Shown: one piece after another, positions 12,703 to 42,570 of the stretch
Numbering within the stretch: the first letter of the stretch is position 1
Layout: every line of letters begins with the position of its first letter
Source: Tubulanus polymorphus
Taxonomy: Eukaryota; Animalia; Nemertea
Assembly (NCBI RefSeq): GCF_964204645.1
Contig: NC_134030.1
Coordinates: 2,277,355 to 2,341,354, forward strand
Direction: 5' to 3'
Length of the DNA: 64,000 nt
Translations under genes and position numbers: made by a program
Notes under the pieces: model-generated
The model's input: the letters and a program-made list of their open reading frames with translations, nothing else
Database searches by the model: none
What the model was told of the DNA's origin: nothing

Positions 12703-13199
12703 TATTTACAGACTTGATTTGCCGATAATGATTTCGAGATGTTCTTCAAAGAGAAAGGGTAAAAGAAACCCATGTATACATTTTCTTCAAAAATATTCAC
12801 CACAGGGGTTCTTATCTGAGTCTTTGGTACTGCAAAATAAAATAAGAATAAGATAAAAAGTACCAACATTGCACAAGTTCATGACACATGTACATGTACC
12901 ATTTTAGGAAAATAATGTGTATAAATTTGTTTTGGAGGACAAATTTTGGTCTCAACACCATTGTACATATGATACGATACGATAGATATGAATTTAGCTT
13001 CATCCGATTGATGATTATTGATGATAACTTCTGTTATATATTAACGTCCGTTCTATGTTATACAGTTCTTCTATGGATATTTGGATTACTTGAACTCCTA
13101 CGTAGGTACACTTATTGCTAAGCAGTGGCATGCGAGTAATAACTTAGTTCAGACTGTCACCGCTATCGATTAACCAAGGGGCAGCACATGGCGGTTTAA

Positions 13200-13496: not shown

Positions 13497-16400
13497 ATGC
13501 GAAAATACAACGAGCTTTGGAGAGATTTGCATAATGCAGCTACTGATGATGATTTTAAAAAATTGAGAGATTCATTTCGAGCTGGGCCCGGAGAAGTTCA
13601 ATTAGGGCTAACCGTGCACGATATCGACACATGTCCGAATATGTCTGAGCTGCGAAAAATACTTGCTGACAAAGGCATCATTTCAGAAGAACGCAACGAC
13701 TTCGAAACCCTGAAGACACACATGAAAGAATGCGGTTTGGTTAAGTTAGCACAGATTGTGGATAGTCACCTGCAAAAACATAGAAATAGTGAAGAGGGAG
13801 TGTCTACTGATGGCGACCGCAGCGGCATTACCAGAACAACAGGTGAGAACAATAGCCTTAATTTTTCAGACAAATTTTCTTACAACTAAATATGGTATTT
13901 ACATGAATACGTTCGTACAGTGAAAGACCGGTTTGTAAACGTATAACGAATCGGCAGAAAGTTTATTTCTGCAGTCATTAAAATGGAAAATAATTCAATC
14001 AAAACGCCCTGTTATTTCACGTCATCTCGGTTCCTCCCGGAAATCTCCAATGGTCCGTTTAGAAATATCTCCAACGGAAAAGAAAAAAATACTTTTTTGA
14101 TAGACGATCACAACTTTTTGTAAGCAGCCATGATATATTTGGTATCGTTAAAAAAGATCAACGGGAGCCTAAAATATGTCTTTTCGAATTTCTGATTTTA
14201 ATTTTTGATAGATAAATTTCGTTTTTGAATTATCATTATTAGGTTTAAGTACATTCTAATCTTATATGGTGAGGGGAGATCTGAATCCCAAACCATTCGC
14301 GATCTGTTAGACATGCTTCAAAATTGTCAGAATTAGCAAATATGACGCGTTGCACGTTTAAAAACAACTTGTAATAATTACAAGTTGTTTTTAAACGTGC
14401 AACGCGAAATAGCGTAGTTAATAAAACGTTTTGGCGATAGAATTCAATAATTCCACGAGATATTTCCCGGTTTGGATACGAAAGCACTGCAGAGATATGG
14501 ATGTCCTGCGTTGGGGAGCTACCCATTATTGCCTAGATTCGTGCCTGATAGTTGAAAAGTTAGCGCCATAGTTCATCCTTGCTTTTTTAATCCATGTTAT
14601 AAACAATCAGTTCGAAGAAAAATCTCAGAGTTGATTCGATTTATAATAATAATCATTAAAACACAGTGGTTATATATGTAATGTCTAACCTGTTAAATGT
14701 TTACTGGTTTGACGACGCGGTCATCGTCGCATTATAGGTATGTAATTATACATATAAAAAACTAGATCTATCATACTGGTGTTCATTCACCAAAAAATCA
14801 AATATTTCAGATATTCTGTCAAAAACTGTTAATTTCCCTTATCCTAAATCATGTTCGCAAAAATATAAAGCTCTTAAATATTACTAACTTCCCTATCATA
14901 AATCATCTCACAAAAATTTAGTTCTCTCAAAAATTGTAAATTTACTCTCAGGTTTTTCCTGGAAGGTAGAGTTGTCTATCAAACATAATTGTTCTGGTTT
15001 TCCGCATCGAAGTTTTCTATGAAAAGTAATTGTTTTCTGGGAACTACTTAATCATAATTTTGACACCAGAAAGATAGATTTGTTTAAATGGGCCCAAACT
15101 TTGAACATTAGATAGAGTTGTAAACAAGCTTTCTAATGGAGAAAAGAGAGTTCTGAACAAGCTCTCTAATGGAGAAAAGATAGTTCTAAAAGATAGTTCT
15201 AAACAAGCTCTCTAATGGGAGAGTTCTAAACAAGCTTTCTAATGGAGAAAAGAGAGTTCTAAACAAGCTCTCTAATGGAGAAAAGATAGTTCTAAACAAG
15301 CTCTCTAATGGAGAAAAGATAGTTCTAAACAAGCTTTCTAATGGAGAAAAGAGAGTTCTGAACAAGCTCTCTAATGGAGAAAAGATAGTTCTAAAAGATA
15401 GTTCTAAACAAGCTCTCTAATGGGAGAGTTCTAAACAAGCTTTCTAATGGAGAAAAGAGAGTTCTAAACAAGCTCTCTAATGGAGAAAAGATAGTTCTAA
15501 ACAAGCTCTCTAATGGAGAAAAGATAGTTCTAAACAAGCTCTCTAATGGAGAAAAGAGAGTTCTAAACAAGCTCTCTAATGGAGAAAAGATAGTTCTAAA
15601 CAAGCTCTCTAATGGAGAAAAGATAGTTCTAAACAAGCTTTCTAATGGCGAAAAGAGAGTTCTGAACAAGCTCTCTAATGGAGAAAAGATAGTTCTAAAA
15701 GAGAGTTCTGAACAAGCTCTCTAATGGAGAAAAGATAGTTCTAAAAGAGAGTTCTAAACAAGCTCTCTAATGGAGAAAAGAGATTTCTAAAAGAGAGTTC
15801 TAAACAAGCTCTCTAATGGGAGAGTTCTAAACAAGCTTTCTAATGGAGAAAAGAGAGTTCTAAACAAGCTCTCTAATGGAGAAAAGATAGTTCTAAACAA
15901 GCTCTCTAATGGAGAAAAGAGAGTTCTAAACAAGCTCTCTAATGGGAGAGTTCTAAACAAGCTTTCTAATGGAGAAAAGATAGTTCTAAACAAGCTCTCT
16001 AATGGAGAAAAGATAGTTCTAAACAAGCTCTCTAATGGAGAAAAGAGAGTTCTAAACAAGCTCTCTAATGGAGAAAAGAAAATATTGTGTAAGCTGCAGT
16101 AGAGGAAAAAATGCTGTACATTAAAAACAATGTATTATGAATGCTTATAATTTTTATTTGATTTGATCTGATCCGGAAAGAACATCGAAACGAATGATGT
16201 TACAACTGGTTTCAATTTGATGCTGTAGCGATCTGATCATGTCTGATTTACCGGGAATATTTGCTTTTTTAACATCGAATAAATAAATAAAGAATAACAT
16301 AAAATAAACCTTGGAAAAATCATTCCACATTCGAAGTTGTCAAATGATTACTCCAAGAATAAACTAGTAAAATGCATCAAACCCGTCCACGAATTTTCAA

Positions 16401-16999
16401 AACCAATGATATTTGCTTCAAAATACGCCTTTATGATGACAAAAATGTCCTAATTCGTCACAACACTTCAGAAGAGTCCTTTGATCCACCCCTGACCTAA
16501 AGATGACTACTAAGATATGGTCGAAATGTTGAATAAACTACACTAGCTCAAGACGTTTTGTTTCATTCTTGGTGTGAGATTCTATTTTTAGAAACCACAA
16601 TAGGTTTCGGTTTTTTTCACTTGTGATAGGGTAAGCTGTGAATCATCATAGAAGTTATCTCTTCTTTTTTCAGGTCAAACAGGTAATGAACCATTGATGG
16701 GTTTGAATGATTCCAAATCTGTAGGACCAAAACGTGAGTTCAACATTTGAGCTTGAATATAATTTGGATGATCATTTGTTAACGTTTTTATGTTTGAAAA
16801 TAACTAATATTTGTCTTAGGATTTGATATCGAATGCCATCGCCACCGAGATCAAAATCAGGAGTGTTACAAGTTTAATGAAGGATCTAAACGCGGTTTAG
16901 TTTTGATTATCAACCAGTTTACCGTAAATCGTACAGGTAAATATTTATCATTATAACAGTGATTTTATCATAAAAATGATGATGATAATTATAATATAA

Positions 17000-17031
<32 letters not shown>

Positions 17032-20000
17032 AAAAATAATAATGGATTCTCTATTCTTGATTACATTTATATATTTTCAGTTAAATCTAGTCTCACACTC
17101 GAATGTTCTTAATCAAATCTTAAAACATATCTTTTTAAACGCACCTATTTCCCATGATCTCATTATAAATTGTGCCTTTCTTACTGTTCATTTTTTTCTA
17201 TATTGTCCTCATTCTATGGTAAACATTGTACAGTGCTTATTTTCATAGTACTGCCCTATAAAAGAAAAAATTATTATTATTATCATTATCATTATATATG
17301 ATAATGATGAGCACACAGAACACATGTGTATGTTTACTTTTTTATTTCCGCTTTATTTTGGAAAATACATATTTGAGCCTAAGGACTGTACCAGTAGGCG
17401 ATATGCTCTTGCGCAAAACGTCTCAAAACCGACAGCATTTTATAGAAAATCGATTTACAACAGGTACCGAAAAAGATGAAAGTGATATAGTAGACCTGTT
17501 TGAGAATGAATTGAAGTACGAAGTAATAAAAGCACAGGATCAATCAAGAGATGCAGCGCTTAAAAAGATCGATGAAATGAAAACAAAACTCGAAGAAGGA
17601 TCGTATGATTCATTTATTTTGTTCATTCTTAGTCATGGTGATGAGGTAAGTACATGTAATTCTAATAAGGTAAATACATGTAGTTTTTATACATGTGTCT
17701 GTAACATGTCTGTCTATTTTGGTTCCCATAAACAAGTGACTGTCTTGACTAATACAAATGTAAACAAGAAAATTAATCTTAATAAATTATTTGACGCCTG
17801 CGAAAAAATGTAGAATTTCTGGGAATAGCTAATGTGGAATTGCAAATTTGAAATTCGAAGTTTTAAGAAATTTGGGGAATTATGAGGTTTGGCGATTGGG
17901 TAGATGATACAGGTCTTCGACTCTAGTAGTGGTTTAATTTTTTGTCAATAATTGATAACTTGCGACCAACTTCATTTACTTATGCCTCTAAGCTGGTCTG
18001 CTACTTCATTGCATCCATGGTTGAGGAAAGAGCATTCTGATGTCTGCTTCATCATGACTTCGAGCATATCGTGTGGCCTAGCCAGCCGGCCCGGTCCCCG
18101 GGTTTGGCTGTCACTCGATCGACCCTAGTCTTGAGTCTGGGTTGAAGTATACATTGTCATTTAAAATAACTTGTTTATGTTATTCTGTATGAATTACCCG
18201 TGTGTCTTGTACGTTTTATTTTCTTGTTTAAAATTGTATTTATTGAATTTGGGAATTTTATCCCAGAATTTCAATGTAATAAGGATCAATAAAAAATTGA
18301 ATTGAATTTTCACCTACACAGGCCTTTTTATGAACACTCGATTAGTATATTCGAGTATGCAAAACGTTTTTATGAGCATGGATTATGTCATAATCCGTCA
18401 TTTTTATGAACATTGGTTATCATAATCGATTAGCATACTCAGCATACTCGCTCGGCGAGCAAGTATGCCGATTATCTAATCCGACCGATATGGTGTTCTC
18501 GGTAGAAGTCGCTGCTGAGTAGGCCATAATTGAATAATTTCTACCTGGCGTTTTTATCAACCAACATACCCGGTTATGCTAATTGACACTAATCGGCTAT
18601 ATAATCTATATAGCTAATCTATTTCGATTTTGCTGGTTCATAAAAAGGCCTGCCATCAGAGGATGCGGAGCCGTATATGACAGCTATGCTATCATAAATT
18701 GCTAATCTCTGAAACCTGCATACGCCTAATATCGAACATATTTTCTAAAACATTTGAATTTTGAAATTATATGTTTACACATTTTCATATTTACCACTTG
18801 TAGCCGCTGATGAAATTCACGCCGGCCCTACACACATCATATATAGCTTCGTCATTCCGCCAGTTTCCCCATGTCAGGGTCTGACTTTTATATCAGACTC
18901 CCGCATCGTGTATACATCCGCCATTTAACCGAATAATCTGATTTACTTATCATTTCATTTCTATTCATGTCTGCCGCTTCTGATATAATCATACATCCTT
19001 TACTATAACAATACGTCTTCTAATGATATTCAATGCAATATAACATTTCGACGTTCAAATATAGGTCATCATATAATCACAGGAAGCCATTCTACATCTC
19101 TGTCAATAATATTTTGCCAGATAGCTTGTTTGTGTACACATAAACCTGTGACGTTTTGCACATCGATTTACGGTTGTCGTTTGTAAAATGACGCTGAATG
19201 GTTAACATTGTTCAGGTTTCATAATGGTAACGTTTTATAAGGCGTCAAAAAAACCCGCAATAGTGAAGTTTCCAGTTTTAAAGCAAAAACCAATGATTTT
19301 GACGTTTTCACATAAATTCTAAAATCATTGCTGCAGATATTCTTATTATAAAAAGGTTTGATAATTTTTGCAGGAAGGAATAATGACGGTTGAAAAAACC
19401 CCCGTAGATGGTAAAAAAGAAGAAACGGTCTGTGCTAGACTTACCATTGCTGAATTAGAAGAAAAATTGACATGTTCCAAATTAAGAAGCATGACAGGTC
19501 AGAATAAAATCTTTGCTGCCAATTTCTGGTTGAAAATTTTATAATTTCCACATTAGACGCTGCTACACAACAGTAACCAAATGCTATTGAATCAAATAGA
19601 TCCTTCTCATATCTAATTGGGTTTCAAAAATGCGTGTATATCAAAAGTATATAGGTTCATACAATTATTAAGTATCTAATTACTTTTATGAATAGTAAAT
19701 ACACTATATTATTATTAACTAAGGTTTTTTTTTCATTTTACTCAGCTCATGGGAGTGATGATGATGATGATTGTAATTTTAGGCAAACCGAAGATGATTC
19801 TAGTTCAAGCTTGTCGCGGTAGAAAGGATATGCTTGAAGCCACTGAAAAAGATAGTGAATGCGCAACTGATGAAATTCATGATGAAATGCCGCTATCCAT
19901 TCCCGATGAAGCTGATTTTCTGACTGCTTACTCCCAGAGAATTAGTAAATACATAAGTCAATCCCCTATATACAGCCCTCCCATTTACCGCCAGTCCCGC

Positions 20001-20631
20001 CCACCGCTAGGTATTCTCAATGTACATCTCAATATAAATATAAATACATACCGCCAAAATCGTTCAGCACCAAAGTGGGCGGTATATTGGAGGTAGACAG
20101 TATACATTATGGAAGCGTCCTGGGGATATCAAGAAAAATTTTTGTTCAAAGAGTTTGTAACTCATAATAAACTAGTTTTCTTAGTTAAATGCGATTTTCG
20201 AGGTTAATTCCGAGTTTGTAACTAGGAATAAACCTCCAACCTCGAAAATCACATTTAACTGAGAAAACTAGTTTATTCCTAGTTACAAACTCGGAATTAA
20301 CCTCGAAAATCTTTTTGAAATAGATATCCCCGGGACGCTTCCGTACACAAGAATGATTATAATAATTTCAGGAAATTAATTTTTTCGGAATTGAGAGTTG
20401 CTTTGTTTATTTCTAGATTATTATAGTCTTCGAGACAGAAACCAGGGAACTTGGTTCATTCAGAAGTTTGTGGAAGTTTTGAAGGAAAATAAACATCGTC
20501 ATGTATCGGACATACTGACAACAGTGAACAGGAGGGTCGCCGAGCATAGAACAGCTAAAGGAGACAAACAGATGCCTGTGTTTATGTCATCTTTGAGAAA
20601 GCTTTTCTACTTTGTTAAACCGACTGAGTAG
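13497..20631 (+). CDS. Caspase-8-like paralog (copy 2), predicted single DED
   Basis: Exons 13497-13842, 16674-16733, 16820-16936, 17464-17645, 19374-19497, 19783-19944, 20417-20631 join in frame. Motifs KRGLVLIINQF..NRTGTEKD, SHGD, QACRG, GTWFIQ. The DED2 exon survives only as broken fragments. Confidence 0.85.
14281..16272. pseudogene. Disrupted, partly inverted DED2 exon relics of caspase copy 2
   Basis: 14281-14365 (+) matches copy-1 5641-5738 with deletions. 16205-16272 and 14668-14711 match copy-1 5731-5799 and about 5793-5835 in reverse complement. Confidence 0.8.
15112..16078. repeat. 33-bp minisatellite (with 27- and 13-bp variant units)
   Basis: Unit GTTCTAAACAAGCTCTCTAATGGAGAAAAGA(T/G)A, about 30 copies. 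Confidence 0.95.
18319..18652. mobile_element. MITE in a caspase-2 intron
   Basis: 17-bp TIR CAGGCCTTTTTATGAAC / GTTCATAAAAAGGCCTG with internal TTTTATGA(A/G)CA repeats. Confidence 0.7.
20111..20343. mobile_element. MITE with TA flanks (Tc1/mariner-like)
   Basis: TIR GGAAGCGTCC(T/C)GGGGATATC at both ends, internal inverted sub-repeats. Absent from the homologous short intron of caspase copy 1. Confidence 0.75.
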
Positions 20632-22832: not shown

Positions 22833-25800
22833 ATGGCTGAAAAACAAGACGCGAAAGAGAAAGAGAGTTTAAAAACGGCGGCTCTTGATTTCGCTAATGA
22901 AACAAACTTCCACGGAGTGAAATACATCGCGCATTCGCCAACCTACTTCACTAGGTAAGTAGCTCATTCTCCAACCTACTTCAGCGCTAGGTAAGTGATC
23001 TTAAATTAGGTGTATATTTTTTATTAACTGGTTCGATGTTAATGAACGAAACTGCTGGGCCAATAAAAGAAGACGCTATACCCAAACTTAGATGCGAGCA
23101 ATGGAATCTTATGAATGGCATATTTATCGGACTTGGATTGTATATCGATGCCGTCATTTTTCTAGATTCATGTACTTTGTATTTCTAAATCACTTATAAA
23201 TATTTGTGATGCGATAAGAAAACGTGAAATCCAAGTCATTCGTCTGATAATTAGTAATTAGGTTATTAAAAGTAGAAATATTCGGACGCTCGCTACCATA
23301 TTTCTTCGATGTAAAATGAAATAAAAATTAACCCGAAATTCATAATTCTGTTCCGCTTCACATTTCATTTTAGACTGACGCGGATAGAAACCACTCGAAA
23401 TATTCATAATTTTGGGATTCGATGATTTGTATTTTAGTTATGAGGATAATATTCTACAACAATATTTTGTACAGCGTTGAATTCGGGTTTAGAAGGAACT
23501 GTCATAGAAATAGTAATCATTCCTGAAAAGTTCAATATTTAAACAAGTAAAACTTATAACACTATATAATTAAGATTTCGCGCCCTCTATTATCCTATTG
23601 TTGATACTGCAACCCCTGAGCTGCTGCTGGCAATCAACAGCTCAATAATAACCGACTCAAAAGGAAATTTATAAGGTGCTCCACGGACGATCGGTCTTAT
23701 ATCTTACATATAGACACATTCCCATTGAGGCTTTTATAATATGATTCCTTGTTTCTGCGCTCTGCTGAGTTTAAAACTTGACGCGGCAGGCCACCTATCT
23801 ACCCTGTACATACATTACCTTTTTTGAAATTGTGATCAATTCTACCAACAGACCCGGAAGCTAGAATTGAACTGGACCCAGTTCCACAGTTGTGAGTTAA
23901 AGTTAACTCTGAGTTAAGGTTAGTTCATTTTCAATGTTTTAACCCAGAGTCAAATCTTAACTCAGAACTGTGGAACTGGACCCTGATTACTAATTCTATC
24001 ATATTTACAAAAATGACCCGGCCGCTGCGGAGAAAAAAGGCATCATTTTTGATTTCTACTCGGGCACAGACGGCTTTTCTATTTCTGAGGGACTTGGTCC
24101 TTAGTGAGAATAAAGACGCATGAATTACATCAGAGTTCATTGTTTATGACCGTATCTAGAAAACCCTGTCCATATTTCGGGTTGGTTTAATATCAAATCA
24201 ATTAACTTTAACCTTTGAACCTTTGAACCACTGATTCCGGGTATTCAAATCTTCACGAACCATGAATTGTAGAACTGCGACATGTTGTTCGGATGATTGT
24301 AAAGTATCTATTCTAATTGTAATATATTTCAGGTTGATTTGGTTGATTTTATTTTTGGGTATGACTGGCGTGCTTTGTTATCAGATATATGACCGTACCA
24401 CGTATTATCTGTCGTGGCCTGTAACTTCTGATATAACAGTGGGAAAACCAGAAACAGGAGAACTCTCATTCCCTGCTGTTACTATCTGTAACACTAACAC
24501 TTTCAGGTAGCCACTTTATTTCTTTTACGAATGTTGAATTAGGTAAAATAATTAGTAAAATGTAGAACTGTAGACTCAGAACGTTAGCGAACAGGAAATA
24601 TCTATCAACGATATTAGTGTCAGAAATCTTTTTGAATTTTCATCGGCGAATAATTCATTGACTTTATCAAAACGATACAATTCAAAACATTGATTCGATT
24701 TGTTACAAGTAGATTTTATGATAAAATTGTAAATAAAATAGACTATGATTTTCCTCACGATTTTTTAAGAATTAAAACCTATAAAACTGTCTTCGTTTAA
24801 AGGTTATCTGATGTAGAGGCGGCCGGGTTTTATGAACAGATATCAGGATTTTACAGCGATGAAACCTACAACTCTTCATCATCGACTGTCGTACAAATGG
24901 ATTTACGTTATTTGATGTTAAACATGAGCCACAGAATGAAAGATTCAATCAAAGAAGCGTCGTTTCAATCTGAATATTTAGATACGAATAATTTCACAGC
25001 AATATTCACTGATTACGGCTTGTGTTACAGTTTTAACATCGACCAATCACGAAACGTTTCCTCATACGGAACGGGTAGGTTTTAGAAATTTGAATATCAA
25101 GAACAAAAATGTTTATTTCGAAAGGGAATCACAGGTGAAAAATCAATATTGATATAACCAAAAATACACAAAGAGGATCTTCTTTGTGTATTCTTATAGA
25201 ACGTATACCCGTAAAACTGTGTCAGAATTCGCCAAGTCAAAGCTAGAAAAAATATTTACTATACGTGGGATTCGAACCCGATGTGATGCGATGACAACAA
25301 TCCTAACCCTCAACAACGTCCGATGAGGGCTTCTAAAAAACGAGGAATATTATCTCATTTAGAATCAATTACGGATAAAATGAGAGTAAAGATAAAAAGG
25401 TGGCAAAATAGGAAGTACATGGAATTGATAGATTTTTATAAAATTCGCACATGCAAGGAAGGACGAGTCTAGCGCGCTGACCATTCGGCCACAGCCCATC
25501 AGCACTTTACTAACGATAGAGGGTAGCCATAATAGAAAGAACAAATGATAAAACACTAATCTATCTAATAGATATGCAAATAGAAAAATGCTAAATGAAG
25601 TTTAATGAATATTCATTAGGTATCGCATTCGGATTGAGATTATTGATAAATATGGAAACGTATCAGACAATGAGCGGTGAACACAAGTCATCAGGATTAC
25701 GAGTTCTTGTTCACGATAAAAACGAAGTTCCTCGAGTCAAAAACCTGGGACTTTTTGTGCCGGCAAAAATGATGGCCGTTATTGGTATCAATACACTACA

Positions 25801-28800
25801 GGTAAGGATGAACTTAACATTGTTATTGAAAGTGATTTGTTTTTAAAAACTTGAAGAATGAAATCGTCATTTGTTTTGAGAATTCCTTTAGAAGTGCTGT
25901 CTATCATCTGGGGCCAGTTGCACAATCGCGCAAAGTTGTGCAATCTCTTAAAGCGGATCTTAAGTTGTTAGATTGGCTATAGAACTTAGATAGTCTTAGA
26001 CTGGTCTTAAATCTAGTTTAGAATACTTAAACGTGTGATGGGAAGTCAAAACAAGAAAAACATAAATTGATTTTTCAGACGACTGAACTGCCATATCCTC
26101 ACGGTACTTGTAAACATGGCGTCGCTCCGTTGGAAACGTGTTTAAGACAATGTCACATTAGAAAAGCTGCCGATGTTTGTCAGTGTTTGCCTTATTACGC
26201 GGAACAAAATCTATTCGATGGATTGCCTTATTGTAGCATGATCAAAAACCGTGACTGTATGCAACTAGAACTGTGTACGCTTTATTCATTCAAACATTTA
26301 TTCATATTTCTATCTGTTCAACTATGTAAAGCTACACTTGAACCTCCGTAACGTATCTCCATGAATCGCTGAATAACCATCAGATCAGATTTATAAATCG
26401 CGTGCAAAGTGAAACTAAACGATTTGTGTTATGTACTTAGCAACGACACAGTAAAAATAGAACGATTTTAGTAGAATACACAAAATCAATATTCTGTCAG
26501 TCTGTTAAACTTCTTTTGAATCTCCATAACAATTTCACCATGAATCACTAATTGTAATCATCGCTATGTTTTACTATCAGAACAGATACATTTGTACACG
26601 GAACTTCGGACATAGTTACTATATGATTTGCATTAACATCACTGTGTTCAAAGTTACAGTAAAATAGAAAAAGTTTGGTAGATTAACAAGTTTTAGATTT
26701 AATTTCATTAAATGTTTTTTTTGTTATTCATTTCAGCCGAAGTAAAACGGAATTCATCAATTTGTAATTCACAATGTTCAATTCCTTGTCAGAAAATCTC
26801 ATACGAATCGCAAATCAGTTATTCGTCGCTATCGTCTTATATGGCTAAAACAATATCGGCTAAATACAGTCATGAAGAAACTCTGGTCTCCGACTATCAG
26901 ACTTCAATGGACGCCATTCATCGGGTCGACCCGAAAATAAAAACCCAAGACCTTGAGATAATCTCACAATTCAATAACGATTTGGTCTGCGTTAAATCAC
27001 AGATAAATGATTTGGTAACATTTTTGAAAGGTAAATATGATAGAGTCGTTGATGCGTCAATTGATGTTTATGACGCGTTATGGACCATAGTCGACGAATT
27101 GGAAACAACCAAGAAAAACTATATGAAAGTATCAGCGGTTGATCGAGTTGAACCGATGATTCTAACTCCGTTAGCCGAATTCAGACAAGCCTTAAAGTTA
27201 GAAGTTCCAGTGCTGTTAGATGTGATGCGAGATTATTTGCTATCACAAACAGGAACGAGAGATGAATATCTGGAGAGCTCCGAAAATGTATTCGATATTT
27301 TTGAACGAGTTTCCGACGTTCAACTCCGAGTTTATAATGAATTCAATGACGTCTATTTGAATTTGGTGGAAGAAAACGGAAAATCAGAAGACGCCGACCC
27401 CATGAGGCGTTTTCCTGCTCAGTTATTATCTGACGAACTTGGAAAGATTAAAGAAACTCTGGACCAACTATCGGATAGGACTGACGCTATGGCCGCGGGT
27501 TCAAAGACAACTACTGAGAAAATCCAGGCTTTCGACTCTCAACCACCGACCGCGTACGAATGGACAGAGTTTGAAAATTCGATTCAAAACTACACGAAAT
27601 ACGCGAGCGATATCGGCGAAACAGCTTTAAACCTTTACGATCAACTCGGGAATATTCTTACCAAAGTGCAAAACATGGTGGCTAAAACTAACACTCATCA
27701 GTTAGCTATAGACTTCGCCTACACTAAATTGCTGAATGCTCTAGAAGAGATTCAACCAAGTCAACCCGATCTACCCATTGATATTGATATCGATCTGAAA
27801 ATAACGATGGACAAAGCGGACAAAAACTTCATGCGACCTTTTCAAGATGTTACCAACAACGGTGACGTCATAGGTAGAATGACAGACGTTCTAGAAGCGT
27901 GTGAGAATATGTATTATATTGATGACTTGCTGTGGGATCTGAACGCATTCTTAACGAATGACTTTCCTAAAATCACCTCGGCCTATCAGGAACTTAAAAA
28001 GTAACGTATATTAAAATTTGTATTCACTTGAGTTTCATTTTTCCCATGTAACAATGCTGTTTTCTGGCTTTCGGCAATTTTGAATTAAAAAATCCTAAGG
28101 TTAGAAAATCAAGATCATTATTCTTTCATTTAACGTTTATCAGCTACTGAATCTTTGATACAGGGCTTTTCAATCCGCTGATGTATACTTGAATGATAAA
28201 GTACTTTCGACATTTCCATCAACAAGTGAAATAGTAACTCGAATCATGCCGACAATAGAAAGCCACGTTAGCAAAACCAAAGCCCAATCTAAACGCGTTA
28301 TCGAAATGGCTCGTGAGCTGAAGTCAAAGCACAGAAAAGTAACTGAATCAAGAATTAAACTGATTGAACACATGGCAGAATTCAACGAATCGATACAAAT
28401 CGATGACTCCTTCATCCAGTAAGCGAGAGTTGGGGATATTTCAAAAAGCAACAAAATTAAAATCTACTAGTTTTCTCTTGATTAAGACCTGTCTCATTTC
28501 TTCCTCAATTCAACTTTCAGGAACAATTTTGTTTATGTGAACGTATTCTTAAGAACGATGGAAATTCAGAAATTGTCGAAATCGAAAGCGTACTCTTGGT
28601 TCTCATTGGTTTGTAAGTAACAAGAACAAATAAACATTTCTTTCTTTTCTATTAGGTTTAGTAAATATACACCAATCAGTGATTGATATCATCTCTACGT
28701 TGTTATCTATATATGAAATGCATGACCAATCAGTGATTGAAGTTAACTTCCGATTGTTGAATACATATTTGATTCATGTTTCATGGTTTATTGAAATTAA

Positions 28801-29276
28801 TCTATTTTACGATTCAATTCAGTTTTCATTAGAACTATATTCGAGTAATAAACCATTGGATAAAGAGAATCCCAAACTCAAAAAAGGAAAACGAGACCAA
28901 AAAGGTTTTGTTAAGTTAATGATTCATTTTCCACCTTTTGATTATATCAGATATTTTCATGAATATTGAGATGAATATTGAAAAGTATCCGATATATAAC
29001 CATTAACTAAAATAAACCATTTCTTTCTTGTTTTACTTTGCTGAGTTTGTGATTTTCTATGTTATATTTGAGTAATATTTGATGTTGTATTGAACAGGTG
29101 ATATTGGTGGAACTGCCGGATTGTATCTCGGTGCGTCTTTACTGGCGCTCGTTGAGGTTTTATTTTTCGTCGGGAATCAAGTGATCAATTCATTCACGCG
29201 AGCCGGAAACAAACCGAACGAAGTTAACCAACATCCGGACTATGTTGTGAGAAAGACCCAGGTGATCGCCATGTAA
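22833..29276 (+). CDS. DEG/ENaC (ASIC-like) ion channel with a large extracellular insertion, copy 1, about 911 aa
   Basis: Exons 22833-22954, 24333-24506, 24803-25074, 25620-25801, 26079-26274, 26737-28000, 28164-28418, 28521-28612, 29098-29276 sum to 2736 nt in frame. Motifs FANETNFHG, TM1, FPAVTICNTN, TDYGLCYSFN, GLRVLVHD, Cys-rich thumb, TM2 CDIGGTAGLYLGASLLALVE. Confidence 0.92.
23875..23981. mobile_element. Short MITE (CCAGTTCCACAG family) with CTG TSD, nested in another repeat
   Basis: TIR CCAGTTCCACAGTT / AACTGTGGAACTGG. The host repeat at about 10795-10930 shows the empty site GAACTGATTAC. Related ends at about 46100, 48255 and 54750. Confidence 0.7.
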
Positions 29277-32200
29277 AACTCAAACTGATAAATATATTTA
29301 CGATAATAAGTTATATGCGAACCATCAGTAGATTGCGCCTTTCCTGCCCTCTGCGCCACTAGGACCGCTGTAAATATTTCACCGAGATGACAATCAAGGA
29401 AGTAACGATGAGACCGCTGTAAATATTTCACCGAGTTGAGAATCAATGAACTCGCTGGGACTCGAGCTGTTGGGACTGATGAAAATGTTTCACCCCGGTT
29501 GACAATGGAATAGACTGAAAGTTGTTTCTACTAGATTCTAGTAAAATTCACTGACTTGTGAACGAAGAATAGGACCCGCTTTCAGAAATAAAAACGTCAC
29601 GATTAATTGACGGCCAATATGACGTGTATTAACAATTCGTGAAGCATCCTGTGGGTAATGTAACGTGGATTGTGACGATATACTTGAAATTATTATATCT
29701 TATCATGGTTTTTGTCGCTTTGTAGTCTAAACCGACCATGTATTTCATTTTCATATTTTTCTAGTTTTAATCGCTCGAATAAAGAATATGATAATAGAAA
29801 TATAAACATGTATTTTGTACATATGTCTTTCCTATAGTCTGGACAGTTACCGTATTATCTGTTGGGGTTTCGGTGTCTCGAAATTTCGAGACATTGGGAT
29901 TTGATAGAATACTAAATTTTGTTAATTATGTATTTGTCATAAAAGTATTCTTCTTTGGCAATAAAGTTTACGCGTGGCGGTGCCTGAGTTAAAGCTTAAG
30001 ATAATTTAGTGAAATTCAACTGAAGGTTTAATGAGATAGGAAACGAAGAAACTTAGGCGGGCCTATCCAGGATTTGGGACCAGAGATGTGGGGCTAATCG
30101 TAGAGCGGAATCCTTCCGTCTGACGTAATGAAAAACAAATCTAATTAGGAATTTATTTACACTCCAACCATTTCCATAGAAAAATAATATTTACACAATT
30201 ACAAAAAAAACCATTATGAGTTTTCCGGTTTGCTCGGCTACCCGTACTGGCGGGGTAGTCTAGAGAGGCTAATGAAAACCCCGGTTTGCTGAACCACCCC
30301 TCTTTGCGGGGATGCGGTATGATGTTTGATCTGGCAGTTTCAAGTGGTTAATGGCTGGTGCTTACAACGATGCTTATTACTTCGTGGTACTAATACGCTC
30401 ACCGCGTGGGCTTCGTAGAAAGACCACTACCTGTGGTGGCCTTCCCAAATTTTAATTGTCCTGTCCGATTTGGTTTCATCCAATTGAGAGACTGCCTTTT
30501 CCAGTTAGGGCATTTTTGGATCACGTCACTCCAGGAAATGACTTAACGCTTTTGGGCCCCTTCGTCGGTTCCACATGTTTCATTTGAGCTATAGACCACA
30601 ATGGTGACACCATGATGGTCAGTAACTGACCAATTGAGATATCCCCGAGTCTGAACACTTGACTTCGAATTTCGGAAATTTATCATGTAATGTTTGTTTT
30701 CAAACTACTAAGGAATCATCATTGCAAATTCATCACTGACCACCAATGACCAATTCAAACTTCTCGAATATGAAAACGATATACCGCGTTATGGTGTCAA
30801 ACTAGAAAGGATTCGCCATTGAAAATTCATAAATTGACCATCACTGACCACCACTGACCAATTGAAACTTCTTGAAAGAACGATATACCGGTACCGCTTT
30901 TGGTGTGAAACTAGAAAGGATTCGCCATTAAAATTCATAAATTGACCATCACTGACCACCAGTGAAACTTCTCAAATATCGTGGTCGAATTCGAAAGTGC
31001 TTGTCGTCGTATTGCTATTTCTAGAAACCAGCAGAAAGTTTTGCTACTGGTTTTGAATGGCGTTGATATGATGGAAATTTATTACCCATAAATGGGTTAC
31101 ACGTCTGGATCACAGCACCTCACTTGCCGCAGTGCGTTATTTTCACTGCATAGTAATGCTAATACATAAACTTTTTTACTACTTGACTCGAATCATCTGA
31201 ACAGTACTGCGTTTGAAAACTCAACGAATAGAAAATGTTTGCGGGATGCGCCTACAAATAAGTTATAATAAGATTAATTAATCGATGCATGAAAAACAAT
31301 TAAATCACAAGGTGACTAACACCCGTCTTTCACACCGTACTGTATCTTTGTACTGTATCTTTTTATTTTCACTACTACCGTAATTGACTATGATGTTTTC
31401 AAGTGGTCGAGGAGTATGGATGCTAGTTAACCGGGTGGCAAACACTTGAGATCGGCCGTCCCACTTTTACAGTATCTTGTTTAAAATGTTTTGAGTGAGC
31501 GAGGTTGGCTCACAACAGAAAAGCAGGTCACACACAGTAAAATTTGACAAATTCATAAAAGTTTTCATATCAAGTTCTAAACTAATTTTAAATAATCTAG
31601 TCATAGTGGGAATGAAAAACTGATGCTAGCGATCTTTTTTTGTAGAGATAGGGCCAAGATTAAAAATTTTAGAGACATTTCAAATTTTTTGAAAATCGTC
31701 AATTTTTATCCGATTTCGATGAAATTAGGACACAACATTGATGGTAGATAGCTAAACAAGTGTACGAAATTTCAGACTGATCCATTGACCATAGAAAAAG
31801 TTTTGATGTTGCCTTGGTACAATGAATGAGGCTATGTTTTGTTTATGTATACTGATGACTATAGGTATCAAATTACTGTTAATGTGCTCTGTGAGCTACA
31901 CTAATTCACTGGATAACTCCTCCCTCTATGTCATTCAAAGATTCAAATTTTGAAGGAAATACCAACTAAAAAGCTTAATTTCTCGTAGAGGAGGGCCTAA
32001 AACATATTTTTGACTGCAGAAATGAATATATTACACATTAATACATATGTCTCACAAAAAGGAGGGTCCATATCGGATAACTGACAGAGAAAATAGGAGA
32101 ATTCCAGTTTCAGCCGTTGGAGCTCTCCACTGCACTATTGCTTCATGGGTACTGCCATCTTTGACATTGATTGGGCTTTTATACCGCTAATAGCCGAAAG

Positions 32201-32796: not shown

Positions 32797-33833
32797 TGTA
32801 ATAAATATTCGTATTTGTATTCGTATTCGTATTCGCATGGTCTCGCGGCCGGTGCCTAGTCGGGATTCGGATCGGAGTTTTTTGGGGTTTTGTACATTTT
32901 GTTAATTTCTTAATTACAACCCTGGTCACTCAATATTCTCTTATTACTGCCCCACTCTCTAAATTTCTTTTATCCTTTATTTCCACGATAACCAAAAGGC
33001 CAGAAAACTAATATGAATGGAATTGGAGAAATATATTTTGCTTAGAAATGTTCTTTAAAAATCTGTAAAAGTGGGGATGAAGTCGACGGAAATATCAGAA
33101 CAAAAGACTGAAAATTGTCGTCGAATTTCTCTATACAGCAAACTAATTCTTAATGAATTTAAGTTTGCGATCAAATTCTTGTAATACATGTATAGCAAAG
33201 AATATGCGACCTCCCTCGAGGGGTTAGATAAATAAACGACTGTATTTTAACGAGTTGTAATTGCTCGTTGTTGATTTTTCGTGCGGTTGTCTTGAAGCCA
33301 AGTTAAATATGTATATACTCTAAAAGCAAGATGTCTAACGCGTTTTTCTCTATTTCGGAGAAAATACTGAGATATTTTATTCAAGGTCCGCTATGAAGAG
33401 TGTGAACCATGTTTTCGAAGTTATTAGAAATAGTTGTAAAGGAATTCTCAATGTCCGGCCACCAGTGAGAGTTGAGTTTTGATAGGATTGGTGTAATCAT
33501 GACTACATGGGATAACAGCGACAAGGAACGAAAAGTTCTGCTATTTGTAAGTGACGATCTCTTCTCCGCACAATAGAGTAATAAAGTAAGTAACCAAGTC
33601 ATGTGTAGAAAAATTTAAGGAAAAATATATCAAGATTGACAGTTTTCAATAGTTTATACTGTCATGGAAAGATGGCATCTTTATGCATTGAGAGACGACT
33701 CGTTTCTTTTCAGTTCTAAACTAAAAACAATTTTGTGTCGATCTAATGTTGATATTTAGGAACATTTCATGAAAAACCCCAGTTTTCGTAATGGAAAAAC
33801 AAACAAAAAAATTATAGAATTAGAACTTTTAGT

Positions 33834-34158
33834 AGAACGATGACCACACTCAAACGTGGTGAACGGATAATAAGATAAAATCCCACTATTTACAGATTAA
33901 AAGAATTTAAAAACCAGAATTTATTTATTAAATCTAAAATATTTAAAAGTACTAAACACTAATTATTTACTCACTCACCAATTTACTCAATTAACCTGTC
34001 CTCCTCTGTATATATACCCCTGTTTTTAGTCTATTTCTCACACTGACGATGATCTCTAGGGTGAGATCGAAACGTCGTGTCTTTTAAATATTTTAGATTT
34101 AATAAATAAATTCTGGTTTTTAAATTCTTTTAATCTGTAAATAGTGGGATTTTATCTT
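33834..34158 (+). mobile_element. Family-B palindromic retro-insertion with hammerhead motif (Penelope pLTR-like)
   Basis: About 80-bp inverted arms plus an unpaired tail. TATATATA at about 34008, HHR core 34043-34076, AATAAA at about 34101. TSD ATTAGAACTTTTAGT at 33819 and 34159. Confidence 0.85.
34043..34076 (+). ncRNA. Minimal type I hammerhead ribozyme motif
   Basis: CUGACGA-U-[GAUCUC uagggu GAGAUC]-GAAA-C-GUC: conserved core, 6-bp stem II, palindromic ACGU in place of stem III. Confidence 0.75.
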
Positions 34159-37100
34159 ATTAGAACTTTTAGTTTTGCAAGTTCAGTTGTTTATTGCAGT
34201 TTGAGTTGGAGTCTCGTAACTTTTTGATATCGTCAATCACATACAAGAAAATTGAAAGGAATTTTATGATCGTGAATTATCTGACATTTTCACCCAATAA
34301 TCAATAAATTCCAGCTCACAAATTCTCGGCGCCCGGTAAATTGAGGCTAAATAAGCGTTAAATATCAGACGCCATTCGATCAGATATTGTATTGTATTCG
34401 TAGACATTGAAGAATCCACAAATGACAAGAAACAATGAAATGATTTCTGCGAGTTCAGTCTATACTGATTAATTAACGAGGAATTAATATAATAAATCAA
34501 TTAACATATTATCAGATTTATAACTCGAGGTATCGAATCTTGTGTTCATCCGGTTACGTAATTTCAAACATTATTCATATTGTTCTTTAACTATTTGTGT
34601 ATAGGGTTCATTGTTCGGATTGTTTACATTATCATAAAACGGCTGAAGTTATCTTCATAAAACGTCTGTCGTTTGGATTACGAGGATTAAGATTGATATT
34701 AGTTTTGTAAGCCGGAGCCTGGTACATTATATATTTACTGGGAAAGCATTTCTCAATCCAGAGCTCGGATATAACCGCGTGAGATAGATAGACAGTTTGA
34801 ACTCACAGCTTTTACCAAGCAAATAAATACGAGGTAGGTTGAGTAATAATCTGATGTATTCTCGAATATTTTGATGATATTTCAGAGTTTATTTATCTGA
34901 ATGTTTTCTCAGAGAGAAACAGTAATGAATGTTAGAATTTATATCGATATCATCATTGACTCGAGTCAACTCGAGACCATCAATGGCACTTCCATCGTTT
35001 TATCAAGTCGATGATCTATGAGAAATTATCTTCAGGATCTGGCGTGAACTCTACCCTGATAAATAGTTAATATCCAATACACTCAGACGTGAAAAACGGA
35101 TAATGATACGATTTAAACCAATTATATACAAATTTGAAATTCAAATTTGAAAATGCTGATAAATGAATTGTTTTCTTTTGAATTCGTGTATATATATATT
35201 CTATAGGTTTTAATGACAATGATGAATTTTCACCATGAACACATTTTATCTATCGTTGGTATTCATTCACAAATCTTTCTTCCGTTCTATTCCATCATTG
35301 GCATTTATTGTTACCGGTATTTTTCACTCACGAGATGGTGTTTTTTGTCGATGCATTTGGCAAATGAAATTTCTTTTATTAATGTATAAGCTACGGCTGT
35401 TGTCAAGGTGCTATATCCGATAAACTCTAAACTGCGGTTTATTTCCTCCGAATTGCAATTGTTCTAGCATCATACAGTTTTTACGTATAAACAACCAACA
35501 TTGACTAATTGACTCAATTTACCCCTGAAGGCTCGAGATAAACCGATCTATGATAAAGCGACGAGTTGTATTCGAATGTAATCTCCCACAGAAATCGTAG
35601 TAAATTACTGAGCCAGAAAAACTAGACACGGATCCAAATATACAGTAATTTGATAAAATAAAATTCCACAATAGAAATGAGGAATGAACTTCCAAATGTT
35701 TCCCTGAGCGAATTTTAGTTTATTTCATTGCTCTGAATATGAGTTACCTTTAGGAGCACTGGTGATATAACAAAATGATGAGCTATCCAATCAAGGAAAC
35801 ATTTTTGACTCTGAGTCTAATTGTGTTTAGCCAAAACGTTGCTCAAATTATATACACTTCTATTCAAGAATTTTTCATCTTCGACTGAATCATTGTGGGA
35901 TTTCTCTCGTCATTTTGGACTCTATTTTTCATTCTGTTTGTGGGGTTTTGTATTATATTTTCAACTCGGACTCAGTGTTTCATCAATGGTTAATACGCCT
36001 GTAAATTGCCATTATAACCGGCTATGCCACCATCTCTTACAGAACTAATAAATAACCAGGTCAAATATTAAACTTTGGTAAATATTGCGAAGGATGTGAC
36101 GTGTTTGACTTTCTTTGTAAAGGTCGATTGGGTGGAGAGAGGTTGTTTTAGTTGAAAGGTTCGCCACGGAAAGGTTTGTTTAGTTTTAATGTCGGTTGTA
36201 TGGGTGCTCGTGTGCCCGCGTTAAGGTGACCTCGGAGTTCATTGTCCCCGTTACAAAATTGTTTAGATTGGGTGCAGTGTCGGGGACAATCCGAGGCTGA
36301 TTCTTGTTGATAGAGTTCCCGCGATAATTCGACTGATGTAGAACTCAATTTGAATTCTACACATGATTTACTAAAAGAATAGTCTGGATTATAATAATCA
36401 ATAACAAGTCATTAGTACAATGCTCCACTAATGACTTAAAATTTTTCTTAAAATCCATGAAAATAAGCAGTTTTCCAGGTTATCATGAATATCTGAAGGA
36501 AGAGAATGTGTTAGGTTGACCCAGGATGATGTCAGCACATAAATGATCATACGGATGAAATTCACACTATGATGATATTGTTTGACGTGTGCGGTGAACA
36601 CGGAAATGGGAATCTAACCACAGTTCGGGTCGCTGCGAAACTGTCACATCGCAATCAGTGACAATTTAATAAACATCAAACAGATCTCAGATAACGAGTG
36701 GACGTAGATTTAATGAGACTATTGTCTCGACGATTAGAAATGTTATAATAAGACTTCCTTAGCCGCTGGTGGTGAGCAGCTGAGGGATATGGATGACAAG
36801 TAAAAGTCAAAGATTCTGTTACAATAGCCGCACCAGGCCTGGGGTTAGATTTAATAATATTTGTTGTATTTAGAGGATTGTATAGATTGACTGTAAGCCC
36901 ACGGGCTGTGGCATTCTATGACGTGCGCAGATATTTAACAACTAATCTTTTCAATGCGGTTGTGAATTAACGTTTATATGAGAATTTTTGTGACATCTTG
37001 TTAGCAGTATTTGCCGATAGTCAACTTCTCTGTATCGCGAATTCACGCCACTTCGTCCCCTTACTGTTCGTCAATTAGGTCTATAGAGCCGTTAATTCAC

Positions 37101-38361: not shown

Positions 38362-40566
38362 GTAAGTTTTAAAATTATGAATGATTATGATTCATCATTT
38401 CTAAATTATTGTAAACAAGAAACCTTTTATGGTTTTGTGACTCTCGGTATTAGGGCTTTAGGGTAAACGTCATATCCATCACGGTGACAAGATTTTTAAC
38501 GGCACGAAACATGCATCGACTAAACATAACAGCAATTTGTGACTGAGTAATAATTATCATAGTTGTACCATTTTCAATTTTTTTTTCAAAGAATTGAATT
38601 TTAGCACTACTCTCTAAGTTTTTTTTCAAATGGCTCATTGAATTGAGTCTAAACATCACGACTCTCTTAGTTTAAAATGGCTTACAGATTGGTGTCTAAA
38701 CGTCAAATACCGTGCTCATTTTTTCTTTACAATCGTGGTTTTCTTTAATCGTATTATATGGACAGCTTTTATCCATGGAAACTAAAATGTTTGTTGAATT
38801 TCGATTCCACACTAGAAGCATTTTAGGAACGCGTCAAATGTGTCTTGTTATGTGGGTTATGTGACACATGTGCGAAGTATTTCCCGCTATTACCAGTTAT
38901 TGTGTGGGGCCTTATCGAGTCAAGGGCTATCAAAATGTTAAATCGCATTCTTCGGACGTCGTTGACTGTAGAGGGCAAATATTATACTTGTCAAAACGAT
39001 TAGGGCACCCTTGATAAGAGCTTAGAATAATAGAAATCGGAAAACAAATCGTGATTAACAGTTGTACTACATGGGAAATAGGCAATAAGTCGTCAACATC
39101 GGTGAATTCCAAATATCTATCATATCTACAAGTTTTGAATATTCCAATAGCTCCACGATGACCGTGACCTAATTACTCCGCTGTCACAGCTGTCGTTTGG
39201 ACAGCGGTTAGGGGTTCGGCTGTGAAACAATAGGTGCGTTTTTCCCACGGTCTCAAAACGCTGTAATAATCTCTCAGAGAATTAGTGGCTGAATAAATTG
39301 TAGTATATTTATAATCCTGTTATTATTAGGATCCTGTGATCACAACGAGCTTTAACATGATTTTAAAGCTGTGTTTTGAAAGGTACTTTACTCGAGTATT
39401 AGACATTTACGCATCATTTGTTTTTATATGTTTGACAGATGAACTGATGTCAGTTCTCATTGTAGAATACAATGAACATTTGATACGACAATTGATGATA
39501 TTTCGTTAATCAAAATTTATTTGTCTGTTAGTTTCGAGATCTTCAAAGAAACAGTAAAATGAATGTTGATTTGGAGATTATATTTTAGAAAAATCTTGAA
39601 ACTGTCAGAAAAATTGAAATTTCTTTATTAAAAACTTCAATTGTTCAAAATCTTATATCTTCGTTTCGGATGTGAAACATTTTTCTAAAACGAAAATCTA
39701 TATCGATAGCGAAAATATCCAAGTATTCATAGTCCATAGTAACACTGGTTCTACTTTCTAACGATCGATTTTAAAATCTCTAAATTTGAAATATCGACGA
39801 TAATTCGATAATTGAACGATTCGATAATTTGATAATTTGAATTGATCGTTGTTTTCGCGAAACCGGACGCGATGTTAACGGTCTCCTAGTGCGCATGACA
39901 ACGACTCGCTCACCGGGGAAGGCGTTCAACATCGACACAATTAACCGACAATAATTGGAAGACTTTTTATTGTATAATTAACGGATTAAACGAGTCAATC
40001 TCGACGCTATTAAACCGCCCTATAGTTCAATTACATCACCTATATGTGTAAACTTGTTCGTGCTAAATGAGTGCGGGTATATTATTAGGATTCTTTGTGC
40101 GGGGCTTCGCTCAATGGGTGTATTGCCCACTTATGACCCGCTCGGCAACTCCGGCACCATCCCGTTATCTCCGAGGGCCTATTTCATACATCACATCAAT
40201 CGAACAGATTATCATCGTTTCAAGTGTTTTTCGATGATTCAATTGAAAGTTCACGAATCAGAACTCTGCCTTGGACACGTATTTTAAGAAGTCAATTAAG
40301 TACGTTGCATTTATGGGCTCTCATTAATTTCGATAAAGCACGTTAGAATGTGTATTTTCGGGCGGTAACCGACACTTTAGCGATAGTTAATGTAATCTTG
40401 CATGTTTTTACGTGCAATTATCAAGATTTCAAACTTTCTGTAGATCGGCGTTCAAGAATACGTACTTGGCGTGACGTCAGTCAACGGACCTCGGTACTAC
40501 TGAGTAAGATCTCAGTTCCACAGTTCGGGATCTAAGATTAGTAAACTGTGGAACAATAACACGAAA

Positions 40567-40794
40567 TAGAACGATGACCACACTCAAACGTGGTGAACGG
40601 ATAATAAGATAAAATCCCACTATTTACAGATTAAAAGAATTTCAAAACAAGAATTTATTTATTAAATCTAAAATATTTAAAAGACACGACGTTTCGATCT
40701 CACCCTAGAGATCATCGTCAGGTGACACCTAAAATAAATAAATAAATTCTGGTTTTTAAATTCTTTTAATGTGTAAATAGTGGGATTTTATCTT
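40567..40794 (-). mobile_element. Family-B palindromic insertion with an intact hammerhead motif
   Basis: Minus strand CAC-CUGACGA-U-GAUCUC..GAGAUC-GAAAC-GUC-GUG at about 40686-40724. TSD AATAACACGAAA at 40555 and 40795. Confidence 0.85.
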
Positions 40795-41510
40795 AATAAC
40801 ACGAAAGTGTCATTAAGGAGACTAGAAATTGTATATTCTAAACAAATACTCCCAAACGAGTCGAAATGTAGGTATTAACCATCATCTTTGTTAGTGTAAC
40901 GTTAAAAATAGATTTGTCAAGGAGAATTTTGTGGTTCAATTATTCTTTTACCCCGAAGCCGATTCAAACCTCGAACTTTGTAACTCGACCCAAGACTATA
41001 TAACGATATGCGATGAAATGGCTTTAATGGCTTCCTTTGTATTACGTAAACCAGTAACAGCAGAACCCCGCCCTTTAAACATATTGTCACCTTTGAGATA
41101 ACTCATAAATGTTTAATACAGATCGTTGAGGCGCGCTATCCGCCGCTAATTACATCCATAATCCGCAACATGGCGCGGAATTAGTAGAAATATAACTATT
41201 TGGGGTTTACGTGTACGGAATACCCTCGGGGGGATGAAAGCACTAATTCACTAGGGATAATTATCACTAAAACTCCGTGTGTCGTATTCACGATGGAATC
41301 AGTGGGTGTGTATGTAATACGTGTTAATTAGGCACGTGTATCTACAGTAAACAGTATTCATATAGACAAGAGAGCGCGCGGATATTAGTTGTTACAAGAA
41401 CGTGACTTATTCGTTCCTGAAGAGGTAGGAAATTATACAGTTATAAATCCGTGAAACTCAGACAACGAGATGTAGGTCTATATATCTAATGAATATTAAT
41501 ACAACTACTT

Positions 41511-41747
41511 AAAAGATTAAAAAAAACCCCCACTACTTACACATTAAAAGAAATCTAAAATCGAGAATTTATTTATTGAAACAATCTAAAATGTAAAAAC
41601 ACGACGTTTCGATCTCACCCTAGAGATCATCGTCAGGTTTAGATTGTTTCAATAAATAAATTCTCGATTTTAGATTTCTTTTAATTTGTAAATAGTGGGT
41701 TTTTTATCTTATCATCTGTTCACCACGTTTGAGTGCGGTTATCGTAC
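41511..41747 (-). mobile_element. Family-B variant palindromic insertion with hammerhead motif
   Basis: Identical HHR core at about 41600-41637, diverged arms, tail on the right. TSD TACAACTACTT at 41500 and 41748. Confidence 0.8.
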
Positions 41748-42570
41748 TACAACTACTTCAATTTGGAGACTGTCAGAAATCTTGAATCTGATTAGACAGA
41801 CAGTTGTCTAATCGAAACCAATAGAAAGGACTCGTTCAGAACATGGACGCATAAACTAGGGCATGTTCAAGGCATGAGGCTGTAATGCTGAACAGAGTGG
41901 TCGATTAGTCCTGATCACTGTGAAATGAACAAATTCAAATTCAAATTCAAAATAACTTTATTGATCCTTAATGTTCAACATATACATCATTGGATTGAAA
42001 TTTTCAATAAAGTGGACAGGACAAACAAGAGACATGGAGAATAGAAAAAAAAACCAAAAATAATGATGGAGCAGTTTAGAAGGGAATTTTAACATAATTA
42101 ATGTAACAGAGAATAGGCGATGTATCATGATACAAGAAAAAAATCATCCTTTGTGTATTGAGAATTCATAATCATTCAAGCCGTGTTTTATAGGTTTATT
42201 TTTTTTAAGTTCGTATCTTGTTTCGATTTCACATCATAAGTCCACTTATGTGTGAGTAAATACGATGAAGTATATTAGTATGTTAACGGATATCAGATTC
42301 TATCGATCAATCGACTCTCATACTCGATCAACCCGATTCTTATATATTAATCATTATTTCATACAATATCGGCTTCAAACGCATACAGAAAATCGTTATA
42401 CAGAGGTTTTTGATCTTAAAATAGGGATTGACCCTGTTATTTATTTGATTGGTAGATTTCGTTTGATTTTCTGTTTTGGTGTCCCTTACAAACCCACGAC
42501 ACCTGCCGGGAGCGAAACAGGGGGTTTGATTTGGAAATCGGAAATCGAAGTACGTAAATTTAACGTTAAT

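Follow-up and report, generated by a model that had tools for sequence, protein, structure and literature searches.

A domain-sized, predicted helical insertion in the knuckle loop of DEG/ENaC channels of the nemertean Tubulanus polymorphus

Introduction

Gating diversity among DEG/ENaC channels is conventionally assigned to the finger, and the knuckle is viewed as a small static cap. Proton gating of ASICs is associated with His73 and Lys211 (PMC9949801, PMC10507113), and these channels have an extracellular domain of about 300 residues with a two-helix knuckle (PMC9949801). Short insertions in the knuckle loop, between helices a6 and a7, have been described for TadNaCs (PMC6827283). FaNaC and WaNaC are ligand-gated spiralian DEG/ENaCs in which the ligand is bound at the finger-knuckle corner; the pocket of FaNaC1 includes a6 of the adjacent knuckle, and its gating path runs through finger, thumb and wrist (PMC11026163). 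DEL-10 of Caenorhabditis elegans is an orphan whose stimulus is unknown (PMC9822975). In oocytes, DEL-10 homomers gave no pH response and carried an amiloride-blockable current at pH 7.4 (PMC10424705). Lingula comp140230 and Platynereis comp419518 were placed in one collapsed, uncharacterized lophotrochozoan group of clade A with a support of 0.92 (Elkhatib et al. 2023, PMC10507113); this group is mainly Platynereis and also includes Owenia, Lingula, Octopus and Aplysia. Outside this superfamily, stacked four-helix modules act as ligand sensors in bacterial HBM domains (PMC11804620).

Results

Two intact paralogs in the window

The window, a 64-kb stretch of T. polymorphus DNA that was analysed as a whole, contains two intact nine-exon DEG/ENaC paralogs, A and B, which are mutually inverted. 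Gene A (plus strand, 22833-29276) has nine GT-AG exons and a stop-free frame of 911 aa. Paralog B (minus strand, 60634-54916) also has nine GT-AG exons and encodes 912 aa in a frame that is likewise open and free of stops.

22833..22954, plus strand: gene A exon 1, N-terminus and HG motif (22911-22916); conserved in B and P0002
24333..24506, plus strand: gene A exon 2, TM1, b1 and FPAVTICN; gene model, splice contigs, BASIC alignment
24803..25074, plus strand: gene A exon 3, short finger and palm/beta-ball; gene model, splice contigs, BASIC alignment
25620..25801, plus strand: gene A exon 4, beta-ball and palm b9; gene model, splice contigs, BASIC alignment
26079..26274, plus strand: gene A exon 5, Cys-rich thumb; gene model, splice contigs, BASIC alignment
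26737..28000, plus strand: gene A exon 6 (1264 nt), thumb end, b10, knuckle a6 (26835-26864) and most of the insert
26865..28404, plus strand: knuckle insert, residues 359-817, spanning intron 6, predicted all-helical bundle
28164..28418, plus strand: gene A exon 7 (255 nt), insert end and knuckle a7; gene model, splice contigs
28521..28612, plus strand: gene A exon 8, b11-b12 and start of TM2; gene model, splice contigs, BASIC alignment
29098..29276, plus strand: gene A exon 9, TM2 with Cys at the DEG site (C853), GAS filter (29130-29138) and C-terminus
56771-58028 and 56047-56301, minus strand: paralog B insert exons; gene structure

By all sequence criteria examined, gene A is assigned to DEG/ENaC and not to ASIC. 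Two TM helices flank a large Cys-rich extracellular domain (PF00858), and the motifs HG (H27-G28), FPAVTICN (87-94) and GAS (G864-A865-S866) are present together with ten thumb Cys (261-333). The original prediction had described the HG motif, the GAS filter and the thumb Cys as intact, the two insert exons as 1264 and 255 nt, the product as about 911 aa and the insert as open in both paralogs, and the gene model agrees on each count. The closest solved cores are those of BASIC/ASIC5 and ASIC1-3 (9mkz, 9mky, 6l6p, 7rnn; E 1e-28 to 1e-24), BASIC being the best match by E-value only, within tenfold of ASIC2. The BASIC/ASIC core shares the short finger, the thumb Cys pattern and the TM2 motif with gene A, but its knuckle loop has 4 residues and its extracellular domain about 300-370, whereas the extracellular domain of gene A has about 790. 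No His equivalent to ASIC H73 (b1) was found in gene A residues 59-80, and no Lys equivalent to K211 (b5-b6 loop) in residues 180-195. In phmmer comparisons gene A was closer to ASIC/BASIC than to the clade B peptide-gated channels; FaNaC and WaNaC, which belong to clade B and have no giant knuckle, matched far more weakly (E 6e-19 and 6e-7).

The RefSeq protein XP_074652827.1 of T. polymorphus ("degenerin-like protein del-10") is identical to gene A from M51 onward. It lacks exon 1, including the HG motif and part of TM1, and this exon is common to A, B and P0002. The start at M51 is either a mis-annotation or a second 5' end. Within 22833-24506, an RNA-type contig begins 59 nt inside intron 1 of gene A.

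Other features of the window include two diverged caspase-like paralogs (4849-9185 and 13497-20096) with Peptidase_C14 matches, a QACRG motif and matching exon pieces, and an open frame of 522 aa (49114-50682, plus strand) that has no Pfam match. A near-perfect palindrome at 56498-56725 (arms of about 110 nt, -199 kcal/mol, z -30) begins about 45 nt past the donor of the giant exon of B and is absent from A. A search of Rfam over the window, this palindrome included, returned nothing at gathering score. Self-comparison detected palindromic repeat families and tandem arrays at 5765-7108, 12497-12710, 15114-16079, 33833-34162, 40566-41749, 53276-54143 and 61313-61548.

Splicing of the giant exon

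Contigs of run X4 over 24200-29400 (5201 letters) skip introns 2 to 8 at the predicted ends. None of the exon 2-9 joints was present in X1-X3, two of which come from the same sample as X4, indicating that X4 behaves as RNA. Contig 25 (27143-29400) differs from gene A at 3 letters, while A and B differ at 163; it joins 858 nt of exon 6 to exons 7, 8 and 9 with A-specific letters. Contig 24, which bears the exon 5-6 joint, is an A/B mosaic. No joint skipping exon 6 or 7 is listed in the X4 contigs, which derive from one study and drop rare isoforms. Inclusion of the giant exon, on which the original prediction depended, is thus seen in spliced contigs that retain both insert exons.

Position and composition of the insert

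Relative to solved BASIC, residue 358 of gene A aligned by phmmer with BASIC 367 and residue 818 with BASIC 372 (the query was P0001, and gene A numbering equals P0001 + 50). About 455-460 residues (459 in gene A) therefore stand in for the 4-residue BASIC loop between knuckle helices a6 (349-358) and a7 (818-823). The insert had been predicted to lie in the knuckle region and to start directly after b10; the region was right, and the start is later, since a6 precedes it. The insert has 2 Cys and a net charge of -30, and its hydrophobic moment at helical periodicity reaches z = 7-8 against shuffles, with none at beta periodicity. A Cys-poor, amphipathic stretch of roughly 450 residues, as first described from the letters, is what these values indicate.

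Searches of the insert against Pfam, PDB sequences, Foldseek and the Atlas returned nothing more specific than generic rows of coiled-coil or helical-bundle type. Rows for spike, nucleoporin and toxin proteins were discarded as heptad-composition matches. A phmmer search of the insert against 1.84 billion representatives matched four proteins of Tubulanus and, spuriously, one bacterial repeat protein, and nothing else, and the matches in three word-indexed homologue searches were limited to Tubulanus and one oyster protein. These searches were queried with individual exons or database proteins, the joined 911-aa model being used in scripts only. The empty homologue searches reflect fast divergence and not an absence of relatives.

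Distribution of long knuckles

The A-type insert is found at 22 loci in the Tubulanus genome, including a tandem cluster of nine, and an oyster-type insert at five further loci. Insert-bearing loci thus number at least 27 of about 45 ASC loci, the latter being a hand count and a lower bound. Across the Tubulanus paralogs and oyster, insert length is 438-498 aa. At most of these loci the insert lies within a single exon of about 1.5 kb; intron 6, which lies inside the insert, is confined to A, B and the two paralogs close to them. Two insert-bearing loci on separate contigs, L003 (C4:8.83 Mb) and L004 (C6:9.87 Mb), share 97-100% identity with their introns counted in and represent either a very recent duplication or an assembly duplicate. 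At L039:1375-3067, a 58-nt gap and a frame change split the insert, which is either a small gained intron or a broken copy.

Oyster XP_061183628.1 carries an insert at the same site in one large exon. It shares 21% identity over 379 aa with Tubulanus L044 (36-38 bits, decoys at most 6). An A-type profile matched L044 weakly, at 15.3 bits across some 50 residues of the base (decoys up to 7.7), and direct comparison of A-type and oyster inserts gave no significant score. By these scores, insert homology appears clear among A-type loci and for the pair of L044 and oyster, and weak between the two groups. The exon ends shared by Tubulanus and oyster were not taken as proof of insert homology because the introns may predate the insert.

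C. elegans DEL-10 (T28D9.7, NP_495302.3, 1069 aa) has about 350 extra residues at the a6-a7 site (FASTA of PMC9822975). From the last thumb Cys to the knuckle end there are 381 residues in DEL-10, 33 in BASIC and 487 in gene A; the knuckle of DEL-9 is of normal size (FASTA of PMC9822975). DEL-10 resembles gene A in the site of the extra residues and, by eye, at both ends of the insert, but its insert is about 100 residues shorter with an acidic stretch, its C-terminal tail is long and it is a single gene. In an Atlas feature search, a cluster of nematode "del-10" proteins (973 aa) also scored 0.95. By eye in the published FASTA, Lingula comp140230 and Platynereis comp419518 are expanded there too, by about 500 residues; taken together with the oyster protein, the excess at this site is about 430-500 residues, which look helical. 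Gene A thus probably belongs to a long-knuckle protostome group with 350-500 extra residues between a6 and a7. The uniqueness implied by the original prediction does not hold: an insertion confined to one gene or species is ruled out by the 27 or more loci, oyster, DEL-10, Lingula and Platynereis. That the insert might be a described feature of a characterised subfamily had also been considered; DEL-10 is itself an orphan channel, and searches of the open literature turned up no account of a knuckle insertion of domain size. One published trimmed alignment had removed the extra region from DEL-10 (PMC9822975).

Sequence evolution of core and insert

Between A and B, dS in the core is 0.07-0.10 and introns 2, 4, 5 and 8 are 87-93% identical, whereas dS in the insert is 0.61 and exon 7 is 61% identical. 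This indicates that the core has been homogenised and the module has not, a contrast that, on these alignments, has the pattern of gene conversion acting on the channel and sparing the insert. Within the insert, a 140-nt patch (27571-27710) is 97% identical to B with flanks at 77-79%, and represents a short tract of conversion across the central part of helix H4. Exon 7 of gene A is 77% identical to the distant pair L003/L004, compared with 61% to B.

The A/B dN/dS ratio is about 0.3 in the core and about 0.3 in the insert, indicating that purifying selection acts on the insert. Within the cluster of nine genes, the insert has a dN/dS of 0.33-0.67 and core dN is much lower; hydrophobic insert columns are protected, with non-hydrophobic ones exceeding them 1.4- to 3.8-fold in frequency of change. 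Comparison of site models M8 and M8a on this cluster, in our own implementation, placed about 10% of codons at omega near 2; the 2dlnL was 14.6 on a single tree and shrank to 6.2 once segment-wise trees allowed for recombination. This is a hint, not proof, of diversifying selection on the insert. The densest conserved polar cluster of the insert lies at its base, adjoining a6, and the column analysis detected no such cluster in the distal module.

Predicted fold

AlphaFold2, given gene A residues 329-850 with 23 homologues, modelled the insert with a best pLDDT of 84.5 (80.8-84.5 over five models; pTM 0.69); P0001 as a single sequence gave a pLDDT of 35. The monomer model of the insert is an all-helical bundle within one subunit, so the helical nature foreseen in the original prediction is modelled with confidence at the level of the monomer. 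A basal helix (363-379; DSSP on the model) is followed by these helices:

26931..27245, plus strand: H1, residues 381-485 (about 105 residues, one 1-residue break), spanning both modules; DSSP on the model
27258..27749, plus strand: H2, H3 and H4 (490-530, 543-583, 588-653); DSSP on the model
27792..28392, plus strand: H5/6, H7 and H8 (668-706, 708-753, 755-813), spanning intron 6; DSSP

H5/6 is short. Rows of the VIA fold search align to model positions 111-299, or to 62-479 and 85-454, and from these aligned ranges the insert is apparently two stacked four-helix modules. The distal module may be read as outer H1, H2, H3 and H4 (or its first half), and the proximal one as inner H1, the rest of H4, H5/6, H7 and H8, returning to the knuckle. 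A continuous second helix of 105 residues was dropped in favour of a hairpin at Pro755 on the basis of the same ranges. At 1.5 A per residue, H1 would be about 16 nm long if straight, from which we infer the height of the rod.

Fold libraries contained no real match to the model. The McpZ chemoreceptor sensor aligned over 308 residues (Z 10.5, rmsd 9.8), and de novo bundles scored higher, so that this likeness is within the noise level for helical bundles. McpS HBM, McpZ 8f7n, PilJ 8wdf and PcaY 6s18 resemble the model in having stacked four-helix modules on long helices, but these bacterial sensors scored Z 10-10.6, in the range of unrelated helical bundles, and have no sequence relation to it. 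The likeness is an analogy for how the insert might work, not homology.

Discussion

We tentatively favour, at somewhat under an even chance, a receptor reading, in which the insert would be a diversifying module that recognises an extracellular ligand or partner and acts on the gate via the knuckle. This reading is based on the repertoire of 27 loci, the A/B contrast of core and insert, the selection hint, the basal polar cluster and the absence of the ASIC His and Lys. It also draws, by analogy, on the a6 ligand pocket of FaNaC1 (PMC11026163) and the HBM sensors (PMC11804620). The channel would be a trimer of non-voltage-gated cation channel subunits of DEG/ENaC clade A, on the ASIC/BASIC side, whose knuckle loop may have grown in a protostome lineage into a helical domain of 440-500 residues. 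Each subunit would project a rod, built of two four-helix modules in a stack, that reaches at most about 16 nm past the channel apex. The rod would bind an extracellular ligand or partner protein, and binding would tilt or twist it against the conserved basal helix (369-380) and a6. Through the contact that a6 makes in DEG/ENaCs with the finger of the neighbouring subunit, finger, thumb and wrist would then move and the pore would open. Among paralogs, a constant core with a varied module could provide a repertoire of specificities.

Several observations weigh against a receptor. The likeness to chemoreceptor sensors does not rise above noise, the distal module has no conserved polar cluster, and the FaNaC1 knuckle stays static during gating. 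The dN/dS ratio is below 1 overall and equal in the A/B core and insert; the positive-selection signal comes from other paralogs and our own implementation, and is smaller with recombination. Gene conversion can also spare divergent tracts without selection, and the near-constant insert length fits a ruler or tether equally well.

A mechanical tether, in which the rod links the apex at a fixed distance to the ECM, cuticle or mucus, or an apposed cell and transmits tension to the gate, is consistent with that length and with the long rigid helices of the model. The inserts of most paralogs have 4-10 N-glycosylation sequons. In ENaC, glycans of the knuckle and palm tether the channel to the ECM when it senses shear, and a tether is the standard model for degenerins (PMC10148893). 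The gene A insert, however, has one sequon only, and net charge among paralogs ranges from about -30 to +18, which is odd for a common anchor. Pfam, PDB and Foldseek searches found no known ECM-binding motif in the insert, the mechanosensory degenerins known so far are of clade B, and 27 paralogs with diverging surfaces exceed the needs of a tether. A tether is unlikely, though it keeps a real share of the probability. Between tether and ligand capture, both of which had been proposed for the helical bundle, sequence evolution leans to a diversifying binding module.

We also consider it doubtful, to the same degree, that the bundles form an assembly or modulatory cap that sets co-assembly, clustering or targeting, or shields the upper vestibule (perhaps until cleaved), with gating by an ordinary clade A stimulus such as protons, Ca2+ removal or amphiphiles. 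The apex is where the three knuckles come together, and in ENaC the knuckle influences self-inhibition (PMC6827283). Divergence of co-resident paralogs is compatible with partner choice, and BASIC is the nearest solved core. The amiloride-blockable current of pH-insensitive DEL-10 homomers at pH 7.4 (PMC10424705) also fits such a cap. The hydrophobic stripes, however, are buried within one subunit in the confident monomer fold and leave no obvious face for a trimer coiled coil, and retaining 460 residues since the mollusc-nemertean split would be a heavy cost. An artefact or neutral passenger (a retained intron, a mobile-element ORF or junk tolerated in a permissive loop) is largely refuted and very improbable: the TadNaC a6-a7 loop tolerates short insertions (PMC6827283) and the insert matches nothing in Pfam, the PDB or the Atlas, but it is included in spliced contigs, its frame is open at 27 loci, its dN/dS is 0.3-0.6, its fold is confident and a related insert exists in oyster.

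If the receptor reading is extended to the family, an ancient protostome subfamily including DEL-10 would consist of receptor-channels whose helical ectodomain is variable and 16 nm long; extracellular proteins or a partner cell would gate them, and nemerteans and annelids would have expanded them to dozens; we regard this extension as speculative and rather unlikely. To our knowledge, such gating is unknown in the DEG/ENaC superfamily.

In Tubulanus, more than half of the detected DEG/ENaC loci carry a knuckle-loop domain that exceeds the remaining ectodomain, and the same site is enlarged in nematode, mollusc, annelid and brachiopod channels that are still orphans. Alignment trimming deletes the region, as seen for DEL-10, which may explain why it has drawn no notice. 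The hypothesis can be tested, since a del-10 deletion strain and an oocyte clone exist and A and B form a natural chimera pair with near-identical cores. With the insert there is also a concrete hypothesis to explain the lack of a known stimulus for DEL-10 and for a large lophotrochozoan clade.
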